This document shows, in pieces, positions 13,250 through 28,133 of a stretch of DNA of 41,706 bases. The notes beneath the pieces were generated by a model that was given only the letters and a program-made list of their open reading frames with translations, made no database searches and was not told where the DNA came from. A program made the position numbers and the translations under genes. This DNA comes from Octopus sinensis (Eukaryota), in contig NW_021836804.1 in the NCBI RefSeq assembly GCF_006345805.1, forward strand, positions 1 to 41,706, read 5' to 3'. Every line of letters starts with the position of its first letter. The stretch's first letter is position 1.

Positions 13250-13257
13250 TATATAAA
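13250..13257 (+). promoter_or_regulatory. TATA box of candidate signal-peptide isoform promoter
   Basis: TATATAAAG embedded in non-microsatellite sequence. Inr-like TTAGTT/TCAGT lies 33-41 bp downstream and the ATG 98 bp downstream. Confidence 0.65.
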
Positions 13258-13347
13258 GCTGTCTGGTTGTAGCGGACATGTTTTAGTTATTCAGTGAAGA
13301 CATCAGGACATCTGCAAACACCGAAACCTGATTTGTGGCCGCCCAAG

Positions 13348-13391
13348 ATGAAGCTCTTCGCGCTTGCCCTCCTGTTTTTCGTCGGTGCTAC
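13348..13391 (+). CDS. C4orf33: First coding exon encoding a signal peptide (MKLFALALLFFVGA|T), probably alternative exon 1 of the UPF0462 gene
   Basis: CAAGATGA Kozak, a classic n/h signal-peptide pattern and AC|GTGAGT donor. Phase 2 matches the acceptor at 27916, giving MKLFALALLFFVGATRG-QVNRPEDH. Linkage to C4orf33 is inferred. Confidence 0.7.
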
Positions 13392-13444
13392 GTGAGTACA
13401 AAATGGAACTTTCTAACACTCTCTCTCTCTCTCTCTCTCTCTCT

Positions 13445-14030
13445 CTCTTTTACTTGTTTCAGTCATTTGACTGTGGTCATGCTGGAGCACCGCCTTTTTT
13501 TAGTCGAACAAATCGACCCCGGGACTTATTCTTTGTAAGCCTAGTACTTATTCTATCGGTCTCTTTTTGCCGAATCGCTAGGTGACGGGGACGTAAACAC
13601 ACCAGCATCGGTTGTCAAGCAATGCTAGGGAGACAAACACAGACACACAAACATACACACATACATATATATATATACATATATACGACAGGTTTCTTTC
13701 AGTTTCCGTCTACCAAATCCACTCACAAGGCTTTGGTCAGCCCGAGGCTATAGTAGAAGACACTTGCCCAAGGTGCCACGCAGTGGGACTGAACCTGGGA
13801 CCATGTGGTTGGTAAGCAGGCTACTTACCACACAAACATACACACATACATATATATATATACATATATACGACAGGTTTCTTTCAGTTTCCGTCTACCA
13901 AATCCACTCACAAGGCTTTGGTCAGCCCGAGGCTATAGTAGAAGACACTTGCCCAAGGTGCCACACAGTGGGACTGAACCCGGGACCATGTGGTTGGTAA
14001 GCAAGCTACTTACCACAGAGCCACTCCTAC
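13445..14030 (-). mobile_element. Major SINE with tandem duplication of its 5' half
   Basis: ~184-bp unit repeated (13647-13830, 13831-14014). Confidence 0.9.
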
Positions 14031-14040
14031 ACTGTATATA

Positions 14041-14290
14041 TCTATTATATAAAATCCGTTCTGTCTGTCTGTGTGTGTGTCTTCTAGGATCTCGGGCATT
14101 CTCCATCCGATTGCGCTCAAATTTGATATGTAGATACCGACGGTATCAGGGCGTATATAAGTCTTGAAAAAAAATTACAAAAATCGATTCCTGGTGAGAA
14201 TGCGATCGATAAAGCCGTGGGGAAGTGCATTTGTACGCGCAAGTACATCAGCTGTTGTGATGTACTTACTGGTACTTTAAACTCTTCGGT
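14041..14290 (+). mobile_element. Non-autonomous Helitron-like 5' fragment
   Basis: A|TCTATTATATAAAATCCG followed by (CTGT)n and CATCCGATTGCGCTCAAATTTG, typical of a non-autonomous Helitron 5' end. No 3' CTAG hairpin was found. Confidence 0.55.
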
Positions 14291-14804
14291 TGCGTATTTG
14301 TGTGGATAAAATTGTTTTTCTTTGGAATAGAAAAAAATTCTATCTTTATTTCTTCTTTTGCTGGTGTCTCAAATTCATGTTCAATCAGTGTTTCTCAAAG
14401 GGGAGGCCTATGGGACGGTCGGAAAAGTTGTTTTGAGAAAATTTGGTTTAAATGTTTGACAACTCAGCACCGTCCATTGGATGGAGGGAGCCTTTTGCTC
14501 GTATATATATATATATATATATATATATATATAATAACAATTTAATAAATAAAACATATGCATACATACATATATGTACGTACCTACATCTATATGTATA
14601 TATACATGCATTTATATATATGAGTACAGGACACCAAATGCACGTATATATACATATAGATGTAGGTACGTACATATATGTATGTATGTATGTATATATG
14701 CATGTTTTATTTATTAAATCGTTATTATATGATTGAACGCCTGGCGTCGATTTCTTATTCTCCAAGTAAGTTTTTATTATATATATATATATATATATCT
14801 TTTA

Positions 14805-15205
14805 CGCTTTTACTTGTTTCATTCATTTGACTGCGGCCATGCTGGAGCACCACCTTTAATCGAGCAACTCGACCTCGGGACTTATTCTTTTTGTAAACCC
14901 AGTACTTATTCTATCGGTCTCTTTTTGCCGAACCGCTAAGTAACGGGGACATAAACACACCAGCATTGGTTGTCAAGCAATGCTAGGGAGACAAACACAG
15001 ACACCCAAACACACACACATACATATATATACATATATACGACGGGCTTCTTTCAGTTTCTGTCTACCAAATCCACTCGCAAGGCTTTGGTCGGCCCGAG
15101 GCTATAGTAGAAGACACTTGCCCAAGGTGCCACGCAGTGGGACTGAACCCGGAACCATGTGGTTGGTAAACAAGCTACTTACCACACAGCCACTCCTGCG
15201 CCTAT
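14805..15205 (-). mobile_element. Major SINE, full length
   Basis: Family match. Confidence 0.9.
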
Positions 15206-25509: not shown

Positions 25510-25980
25510 GTGAGTGCAAAACACACACACACCCACACACACACACGCACACACACACACACACACACACACACACCTCATACACACACACACACAAAGG
25601 CTTACACACATATATACCTGCATACCCACATGTATAATGTATAATGTATGTATGTGTATGCAATGTATGGGTGTGTGTATTATATATGTGTGTATGTGTA
25701 TATATATATATAATATATATCATATATATATATTGTATATATTATATTATATATACATATAAAATATAATAATATATATATTCTGTATATATATAAAATA
25801 TAATAAATATAATATATCTATATATATAATATTTAAATAAAATATTATATATATATTATATATATAGATATAGATATATATATATATATATATATATATA
25901 TAATATAATAAATATAATATAGATATCTATATATATCTGTGTGTGTTTGTGTGTATATGAGTCGCGTGTGTATGTATGTT
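25510..25980. repeat. (CA)n and (TA)n low-complexity field
   Basis: Direct reading. Confidence 0.95.
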
Positions 25981-26454
25981 CAATACAATATAATAATAGA
26001 CAGTCAATTGTTCATGGCATCAAAGCTTTTCTATATTGTTTGTATATAAATGAGTTCAAATATAATTAAGCCTGAAATCACCTTGAGAATTAGTCTAAAG
26101 TCACAAGTATTTATGGAATACTCGGTCATGGGCAGTGTAATTTAATGAGGAGACTTTCCAGTTGATGGAACGGCTCATCATTTAACTATCGAGCATTTAG
26201 ACCAACCATATCAGACTCAGATACACTACCTGGTTTATGTCCGACACTGCCCAGATCCAGCCTCTCACACCTACCCGATAAAATTAAAAACAAAAACAAA
26301 AAAATTCACATCATTAACTCTTTACTGTTTGGATTATTCTATCAAATTTGTTGCTTATTTAGTCACATTATGTGGAATCTATCCTGCATTATCTTGTAGA
26401 CTTGATGTTTCATTATGTGTCTGTGTGTGTGTGTTTGTATATATATATATATAT

Positions 26455-26850
26455 AGGCGCAGGAGTGGCTGTGTGGTAAGTAGCTTGTTTACCAACCACA
26501 TGGTTCCGGGTTCAATCCCACCGCGTGGCACCTTTGGCAAGTGTCTTCTGCTATAGCCTCGGGCCGACCAAAGCCTTGTGAGTGGATTTGGTAGACGGAA
26601 ACTGAAAGAAGCCTGTCATATATATGTATATGTTATATATATGTATGTGGTGTTTGTCCCCTAGCATGCTTGACAACCGATGCTGGTGTGTTACGTCCCC
26701 GTTATTAGCGGTTCGGCAAAAGAGACGATAGAATAAGTACTGGGCTTACAAAAAGAATAAGTCCCAGGTCGAGTTGCTCGATTAAAGGCGGTGCTCCAGC
26801 ATGGCCACAGTCAAATGACTGAAACAAGTAAAAGAGAAAAGAGAAAGAGA
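26455..26850 (+). mobile_element. Major SINE, full length, sense
   Basis: AGGCGCAGGAGTGGCTGTGTGGTAAG head through the AAAGAG tail. Confidence 0.9.
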
Positions 26851-26861
26851 ATATATATACA

Positions 26862-27257
26862 CTTTTACTCTTTTACTTGTTTCAGTCATTCGACTGCGGC
26901 CATGCTGGAGCACTGCCTTCTTTATCGAGCAAATCGACCCCGGGACTTATTCTTTGTAAGCCCACCAGTACTTATTCTAGGTCTCTTTTACCGAACCGCT
27001 AAGTAACGGGGACATAAACACACCAGATCGGTTGTCAAGCAATGCAGGGGGACAAAACACAGGACACACAAACACACACATGCATGTATATTATATACAA
27101 CGGGCTTCTTTCAGTTCCGTTACCAAATCACTCAAAAGGCTTTGGCGGCCCGAGGCTATAGTAGAAGACACTTACCAAGGTGCCACGCAGTGGGACTGAA
27201 CCCCGAACCATGTGGTTGGTAAACAAACTACTTACCACACAGCCACTCCTGCACCTA
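26862..27257 (-). mobile_element. Major SINE, full length, antisense
   Basis: Family match, tail-to-tail with the previous copy. Confidence 0.9.
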
Positions 27258-27406
27258 TATATATAAATTTTGTACAATTCTCTTATTCTTTCATTCTTTC
27301 TTTCTATCAGCCCCTTCACACTTACTTCGTTCTTCTCGCTCTTCTTTCTTTCATCCTCCTCTCTCACATTTCCTGGCTTTCTCTTCATTATCGAGTTTAT
27401 TTATAT

Positions 27407-27845
27407 AGGAGTGGTTGTGTGGTAAGTAGCTTGCATACGAACTACATGATTCCGAGTTCAGTCCTACTGCGTGGCACCTTGGGCAAGTGTTTTCTACTGT
27501 AGCCTCGGGTCGCCCAAAGCTTTGTGAGTGGATTTGGTAGACGGAAACTGAAAGAAGCCCGTCGTATGTATATATATATATATATATATATATATATATA
27601 TATATATATGTATATGTGTGTGTATATGTTTGTGTGTCTGAGTTTGTCCCCCCAACATCGCTTGACAACTGATGCTGGTGTGTTTACGTCCCCGTAACTT
27701 AGCGCTTTGGCAAAAGAGACCGATAGAATAAGTACTAGGCTTACAAACAATAAGTCCTGGGGGTGGGGTCAATGTTCTCGACTAAAGGTGGTGCTCCGGC
27801 ATGGCCACAGTCAAATGACCGAAACAAGTGAATGAGTAAATAAGG
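27407..27845 (+). mobile_element. Major SINE, full length, sense, just upstream of the first shared exon
   Basis: Family match. Confidence 0.9.
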
Positions 27846-27915
27846 AATACATTTGACAGAGTGATCTGAATGCTAAAGGGTCTCACGTTATCTTCTTACA
27901 AATCTTTTTTAACAG

Positions 27916-28133
27916 AAGGGGCCAAGTGAACAGACCAGAGGACCACAGACATGAATTTGAAATCACTAAGCTATGGGATGGAACTCCCCTTAAAAAAGAA
28001 GACACAGTAAAGTTATCTATTGAGGGAATTGACAGATGGCTAAGACTCGAAGTTGAGGCTCCTTTCTACAAGGATCCAGCTCCCCCAGGTGGAAAATACG
28101 GAGAAGCATGTCCTGAACTGTATAACTATGAAG
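27916..28133 (+). CDS. C4orf33: UPF0462 protein C4orf33 homologue, first shared coding exon
   Basis: TTTTTTAACAG| acceptor and AAG|GTGAGT donor. HEFEITKLWDG..EAPFYKDPAPPGGKYGEACPELYNYE aligns by eye with human [36 protein letters not shown] (recalled). Confidence 0.93.

Follow-up and report, generated by a model that had tools for sequence, protein, structure and literature searches.

Alternative first exons of a UPF0462/C4orf33 gene in Octopus sinensis predict protein forms with and without a signal peptide

Introduction

Some genes supply one polypeptide to two compartments by means of alternative starts or first exons that add or omit a signal peptide. Gelsolin (plasma and cytoplasmic forms), the interleukin-1 receptor antagonist (IL-1Ra; secreted and intracellular forms) and the yeast invertase SUC2 are the textbook examples of such secreted-or-cytosolic genes. 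Here we analyse a gene of similar appearance in Octopus sinensis. The window, a stretch of 41,706 bp, is a whole unplaced scaffold that carries one gene of the UPF0462/C4orf33 family, and this gene has two alternative first coding exons, called here exon 1a and exon 1b. Like the three textbook genes, it would add or omit a signal peptide by the choice of the first exon. Those genes belong to unrelated families, and experiments have demonstrated the dual localisation of their products, whereas that of the octopus protein is predicted.

We propose that one gene with two promoters about 5.9 kb apart makes a single domain both with a signal peptide and without it, and that the first form would be secreted or luminal and the second cytosolic. 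We put the probability of this reading at about 0.7. An earlier note on this DNA had proposed a secreted and a cytosolic form made by a promoter switch, and we followed up its claims. The gene model itself is already public in RefSeq and UniProt; our contribution is its interpretation, not its discovery.

Results

Two first coding exons lead to the same UPF0462 domain

The first exon of the conserved domain contains no in-frame ATG. Its His27 stands where, in the family consensus, the leaderless family members have their initiator Met. Thus, an upstream exon in phase 2 is needed, as the earlier note had stated from the same reading of the sequence. The elements at the 5' side of the gene are as follows.

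13250..13258, plus strand: TATA box TATATAAAG, 98 nt 5' of the ATG of exon 1a, unchanged in O. vulgaris and O. bimaculoides; putative core promoter of the isoforms with a signal peptide.
13348..13391, plus strand: exon 1a, alternative first coding exon, MKLFALALLFFVGAT, with a phase-2 GTGAGT donor; N-terminus of RefSeq X1 and X3.
19130..19262, plus strand: putative TATA-less promoter and 5' untranslated region of exon 1b, with the conserved block CAAGTGCGCATGTTTCAAT at 19196-19214.
19263..19288, plus strand: exon 1b, alternative first coding exon, MSEDSCIH(P), with a phase-2 GTGAGT donor; N-terminus of RefSeq X2 and X4.
22873..22911, plus strand: cassette micro-exon YSLPTKKSSTSQQ, 39 nt, in-frame, with a strong acceptor and a weak donor, GTTTGT.
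27916..28133, plus strand: first shared exon, acceptor ttttaacag, no in-frame ATG; start of the conserved UPF0462 domain.

Exon 1a lies 5.9 kb upstream of exon 1b. Its ATG at 13348 (context aagATGa) opens MKLFALALLFFVGA and two nucleotides of a Thr codon, and the ATG of exon 1b at 19263 (context ACCATG) opens MSEDSCIH and two nucleotides, without a targeting signal. The two first coding exons are mutually exclusive, each has its own ATG and donor, and both run in frame to the common acceptor at 27916. Splicing of the window exons gave four coding sequences (CDSs), and their translations turned out to be four RefSeq proteins, residue for residue.

X1, XP_029657912: exon 1a and the micro-exon before 27916.
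X2, XP_029657913: exon 1b and the micro-exon before 27916.
X3, XP_029657914: exon 1a directly before 27916.
X4, XP_036356188: exon 1b directly before 27916.

Since the spliced coordinates reproduce four RefSeq proteins exactly, the exon anatomy is beyond chance. The coordinates of both first exons and their donors given by the earlier note are thus confirmed: among the public models of O. sinensis, X3 is its signal-peptide protein and X4 its leaderless protein. It had counted only these two isoforms; both exist, and with the 39-nt micro-exon, which it missed, there are four. Both forms are also annotated in O. vulgaris (CAI9730684/5) and in O. bimaculoides (XP_014785366/7). The database entries bear only the labels 'isoform X1-X4' and say nothing on localisation, and in the literature searched we found no paper treating the octopus isoforms.

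Exon 13348-13391 could also be imagined as part of a separate gene within 13.4-19.2 kb, without a junction to 27916. We found nothing in favour of this. In X1 and X3, as in CAI9730684 of O. vulgaris and X1 of O. bimaculoides, exon 1a is joined to the UPF0462 body, and the phase of exon 1a matches the shared acceptor. The region 13.4-19.2 kb has no other coding-like open reading frames (ORFs) and holds only SINE copies and low-complexity sequence. A separate gene, a possibility that the earlier note had itself raised, is effectively refuted by these three independent annotations.

Conservation of the first exons and of their upstream regions

O. sinensis and O. bimaculoides share 90% identity over the 300 nt that surround exon 1a. 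The block GGCGCAAATATATAAAGCTGTC, which holds the TATA box reported by the earlier note, is invariant in O. sinensis, O. vulgaris and O. bimaculoides. Exon 1a itself differs from that of O. bimaculoides at 3 of 44 nt, with two synonymous changes and one V>L. A possible acceptor 5' of exon 1a reads ttcAG|TGAAGAC in O. sinensis and ttcAG in O. vulgaris. In O. bimaculoides this site is ttcGG, so no usable acceptor is conserved 5' of exon 1a, which speaks for a true first exon in octopus.

Exon 1b and about 130 nt upstream of it are also conserved in comparison with O. bimaculoides. This upstream region contains CAAGTGCGCATGTTTCAAT and a pyrimidine-rich stretch and has no TATA box. The observed/expected CpG ratio of the exon 1b region is 1.37-1.43 (19001-19800), which places it in the top 5% of the window; for the surroundings of exon 1a it is 0.88. 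Indirectly, these features fit an upstream promoter of the TATA type and a downstream one of housekeeping-like character. The alternative first exons are a fact of the gene's anatomy, and alternative promoters are most likely what they reflect.

The peptide of exon 1b reads MSEDSCIHP in O. sinensis, MSEDSCPHP in O. bimaculoides X2 and MSEDCCIHP in O. vulgaris. Such poor constraint across the three Octopus species would suit the view that only one isoform class matters, the other (be it the leaderless 1b or the signal-peptide class) being low-level transcription or splicing noise in the annotation. On the other hand, loose constraint is to be expected of an exon whose role is just to provide the start codon. 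Moreover, the conservation between O. sinensis and O. bimaculoides covers both first exons together with the start codon, donor and upstream region of each, which speaks against noise in either class. We return to this view with the data on other cephalopods.

The leader encoded by exon 1a

The leader MKLFALALLFFVGATRGQ has K2 as its n-region and the 12 residues L3-A14 as its h-region, and small residues follow. The maximum of the Kyte-Doolittle hydropathy over 9-mers is 3.07 for the exon 1a form and -0.31 for the exon 1b form, MSEDSCIHP, which was correctly described before as having no signal. By a rule-of-thumb test, the leader has all that is expected of a Sec/SPI-type signal peptide: a positively charged n-region, a hydrophobic h-region of 7-15 residues within the first ~25 residues, and small neutral residues at positions -3 and -1. 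The -3/-1 rule is satisfied at three sites, none more than 3 residues from the exon junction: VGA|T, GAT|R and TRG|Q. Therefore, the classical signal peptide of the earlier note stands as a prediction, and its cleavage site completed by the shared exon is ambiguous, TRG|Q being one of three that fit. When the micro-exon is included (X1), the residues after GAT become YSLPT. VGA|T would serve both splice forms because this site lies wholly inside exon 1a. An N-terminal Gln or pyroGlu on the mature chain is thus speculative.

A leader of this kind would bring the protein into the endoplasmic reticulum (ER), and the exon 1a isoform might stay inside: in the lumen of the ER, Golgi, lysosome or secretory granule, or in the membrane. 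The contrast between the two forms would then be luminal versus cytosolic. Signal-anchor isoforms do arise from the same gene in gastropods (Aplysia X1 and Biomphalaria X1), and the knockout of human C4orf33 in HepG2 cells, which reduced LDL uptake by 21% (PMC8953622), hints at a role in the endomembrane system or trafficking. However, the octopus hydrophobic core of about 12 residues is too short for a stable membrane anchor, and the C-terminus, FTPRQ, has no KDEL-type motif. In addition, a peptide of the orthologue is found in ink, a secreted product, which is weak evidence for release (PMC10142993). In this ink proteome of O. vulgaris, the tryptic peptide GQFDFPDFHR is listed under the name of a Saccoglossus homologue (PMC10142993), and we found that it matches the O. 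vulgaris orthologue exactly. Retention inside the cell therefore seems to us unlikely, and we keep to a form that is secreted or at least luminal.

The shared domain and its predicted fold

The remaining exons, assigned by their translation and splice signals, are common to all four isoforms.

32346..32403, plus strand: exon 4, shared, VVEAFFLNDSNQYLEVELAP.
33220..33271, plus strand: exon 5, shared, RGEHLLLMLNGRRNAVV.
35646..35836, plus strand: exon 6, shared, QQLPMYNIAE…GEFDFPDF.
40918..41026, plus strand: exon 7, last coding exon, HRLQFFQK…FTPRQ, with a TAA stop.

The protein belongs to the UPF0462/C4orf33 family. The search gave 239 matches, and the vertebrate C4orf33 homologues among them align with about 85% of the query at E values of 1e-33 to 1e-42. 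The family motifs used for this assignment are WDYEVVEAFFLND..QYLEVEL.PHG.H, NAYAIHG and PDFHRLEYF.

The earlier note had suggested a DOMON/CBM9-like fold, to be checked by structure prediction. Using AlphaFold2 with an alignment of 133 sequences, we obtained a confident beta-sandwich model with a pLDDT of 88.8 and a pTM of 0.85. Residues 1-22 are unstructured in the model, and the fold begins from residue 26. A Foldseek search with this model gave the following best matches.

4jpq, putative carbohydrate-binding protein of Bacteroides: E 2e-6, TM 0.56, probability 1.0.
2ivf_C, haem-binding DOMON-like gamma subunit of ethylbenzene dehydrogenase: E 1e-4, TM 0.36, probability 1.0.
7nwo, CBM9 module with bound glucose: E 1e-3, TM 0.39, probability 1.0.

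The next matches were GFP-like barrels with negligible TM scores. The TM scores of 0.36-0.56 to CBM9/DOMON-like structures are moderate, and the predicted fold is alike. The sequence gave another result. Pfam had no match at E<=1 for the octopus isoforms; among 133 family members it found CBM9_2 in one (E 0.43) and RhaB_D2 five times (best E 0.01), and a sequence profile search of the PDB found nothing. Membership by sequence profile in CBM9_1, CBM9_2, DOMON or EB_dh was thus not found, and the likeness to 4jpq, 7nwo and 2ivf chain C is supported at the level of the predicted fold only. CBM9/DOMON-like folds are mostly extracytoplasmic, and this habit sits well with the leader-bearing isoforms.

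Both leader classes in other cephalopods

In Argonauta hians we found a signal-peptide form, MLVIFSFTVLLLSCVTS…. In cuttlefish-like transcript contigs two forms are present: a leaderless one, MDNKCADP…NKNN|SDISEHAG, and one with a signal peptide, MRQKTIFISLFFFLAAT|DISEHAG. Past the junction they are about 96% identical, the scattered differences being due to their origin in closely related species, and an insert of 162 nt is the one structural difference. The signal-peptide contigs hold, in this order, the leaderless exon, the insert and the common exon. The insert holds an in-frame stop followed by a new ATG and the signal peptide. In the genome of Acanthosepion pharaonis it turned out to be a cassette exon located 143 nt downstream of the leaderless exon (positions 10084-10492 of the locus compared).

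Cuttlefish (Acanthosepion/Sepia) are thus like octopus in having both leader classes, common downstream exons and a signal-peptide exon that ends in …A-T in phase 2. They are unlike octopus in that this exon is internal and lies downstream of the ATG exon, so the order of the exons is reversed. A homologue of the leaderless N-terminal exon of cuttlefish and squid was not found in the octopus window. Apparently, cuttlefish splice in the signal-peptide exon as a cassette behind an upstream ORF, and possibly they use an internal start site as well. As a separate observation, the 143-nt intron of A. pharaonis holds TATATAAAG, which could give an internal start site. The cuttlefish signal-peptide ORF lies downstream of an upstream ORF of about 50 codons with a strong Kozak context.

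We also compared the octopus TATA box, 5' untranslated region and signal-peptide exon with the signal-peptide exon region of cuttlefish at the nucleotide level, and we do not claim homology of the promoters: beyond the shared TATATAAAG, the local alignment is at background, with 47 of 658 control windows scoring as high. A shared ancestry of the signal-peptide exons would be argued by their position, phase 2 and terminal A-T only.

These data bear on the view that one isoform class is noise. In the cuttlefish assemblies, 98 contigs carried the signal-peptide ORF and 4 the leaderless one, and for Argonauta the signal-peptide model stands alone in the database. Both observations would agree with a leaderless class of no importance. 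However, three Octopus species and cuttlefish have the two forms alike, several further invertebrate genes of this family have isoforms of either kind, with and without a leader, and the leaderless vertebrate members indicate that the domain works in the cytosol too. Considering all this, we regard noise as quite improbable and two functional forms as the better explanation.

Leaders in the wider UPF0462 family

Many mollusc homologues beyond cephalopods bear signal peptides or signal anchors, and the listed vertebrate proteins all start directly at the domain or with a non-hydrophobic extension. In several invertebrates, RefSeq isoforms of one gene differ in the predicted leader.

Aplysia californica: X1 anchor, X2 signal peptide, X3 none.
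Biomphalaria glabrata: X1 anchor, X2 signal peptide.
Dreissena polymorpha: X1 signal peptide, X2 none.
Tachypleus tridentatus (horseshoe crab): X1 signal-peptide-like, X2 none.
Sycon ciliatum (sponge): X1 mitochondrial-presequence-like leader (Arg/Ala-rich), X2 none.

Aplysia, Biomphalaria, Dreissena and Tachypleus resemble octopus in having one gene and one domain with alternative N-terminal exons. They differ from it in that their leaders are unrelated in sequence, and heterobranch gastropods add a membrane-anchored (type II) form. Thus, predicted leader-bearing forms are common among the invertebrate family members and were already annotated, which was unknown to the earlier note. In the neighbour-joining tree, close relatives often differ in their type of leader, and the types do not follow two old paralogue clades; the deep nodes of this tree are unsupported.

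A 319-aa homologue from ENA metagenome/transcriptome data has a signal peptide and a second, partial UPF0462 domain in tandem. This suggests that secreted multi-domain versions of UPF0462 may exist in some organism.

The cassette micro-exon and the repeats of the locus

The micro-exon codes for a Ser/Thr-rich segment and is optional after either first exon. It sits within a repeat-rich segment of 3.5 kb (~21066-24572) that O. bimaculoides lacks. O. vulgaris has the segment and, in it, an intact micro-exon with one K>N change, and the annotation of this species has no isoform that uses the micro-exon. The segment consists of SINE copies and a retrotransposon-like ORF tail on the same strand as the gene. 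Because the segment is absent from O. bimaculoides, the micro-exon looks like a young, lineage-specific exonisation. Directly 3' of the micro-exon, an open frame at 22994-23260 on the plus strand, the strand of the gene, ends in …RRGAFSVRVADPWNKLPDEMVKMPTTALFKVSLDLKW. We take this frame to resemble the tail, at the C-terminus, of the reverse transcriptase of a non-LTR retrotransposon. A minus-strand ORF of 113 aa by 22994-23260 is probably spurious.

The window is AT-rich (37% G+C) and dense in microsatellites and SINE copies. On both strands of the whole window, we saw no further ORF that looked convincingly coding. Very long low-complexity tracts of trinucleotide type (ATT/ATC-like and TAT-like) occupy 32400-33200 and 36450-36700, that is, the introns by exons 4-5 and after exon 6, and produce long spurious poly-Ile, poly-Leu and poly-Tyr ORFs. 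A SINE-like core, TTTGACTGTGGCCATGCTGGAGCACCGCC, is present in at least 13 copies in both orientations, with a chance expectation of 0. Its sites include 13466-13494, 17747-17775, 26787-26815 and 27787-27815. One copy begins about 75 nt past the exon 1a donor, and another stops about 100 nt before the 27916 acceptor.

Discussion

We suggest the following order of events at the octopus gene. The upstream TATA promoter would drive exon 1a, which gives a signal peptide at the N-terminus, its small residues lying at the exon junction. The downstream promoter, TATA-less and richer in CpG, would drive exon 1b, which gives a start codon and eight hydrophilic residues. Either exon would be spliced in the same phase to 27916, with the 39-nt cassette optionally between them. 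The outcome would be four mRNAs for an identical beta-sandwich domain in which the leader is present or absent. The form with the leader presumably enters the ER and is secreted or at least luminal, and the leaderless form presumably stays in the cytosol. Promoter use, the function and cleavage of the signal peptide, secretion and any tissue specificity are what we infer from the gene structure. By analogy, this would be the ordinary mechanism of gelsolin, IL-1Ra and SUC2, acting in an uncharacterised family and apparently recurring across its invertebrate members.

Several points weigh against this reading. The isoforms in RefSeq come from computational gene modelling. Three candidates leave the cleavage site ambiguous, and the mature chain has a single Cys, hence no disulfides. 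The three sequons put forward by the earlier note, NDS (95), NIT (154) and NST (212), are present in the chain, and we rejected them as evidence of secretion: NDS and NST are not conserved among cephalopods, and NIT/NVT is conserved family-wide, including the leaderless vertebrate proteins. The ink peptide GQFDFPDFHR lies in the region common to both forms, and ink proteomes include intracellular proteins. Finally, the cassette found in cuttlefish sequences indicates that a 'promoter switch' is not a universal mechanism in cephalopods.

A broader idea, which we offer tentatively and consider possible rather than probable, concerns the family as a whole. UPF0462/C4orf33 may be an ancestrally dual-compartment, ligand-binding and possibly glycan-binding beta-sandwich. 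Across invertebrates, alternative leaders would place the domain outside the cell, in the membrane or in the cytosol; octopods would do this by promoters and cuttlefish by a cassette, and vertebrates would have kept the cytosolic form only.

For octopus biology, the exon 1a form is one more candidate secreted protein, and a peptide of its orthologue is known from the ink proteome (PMC10142993). For the family, the meaning may be wider. C4orf33/UPF0462 is conserved from sponges to humans without an assigned function, and the result on LDL uptake is the only functional hint that we found (PMC8953622). The recurrence of signal-peptide, anchor and leaderless versions of one domain offers a concrete and cheap route to that function. 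If our idea of the family is true, the extracellular ligand bound by the invertebrate isoforms could serve as a way to learn what the uncharacterised human protein does.

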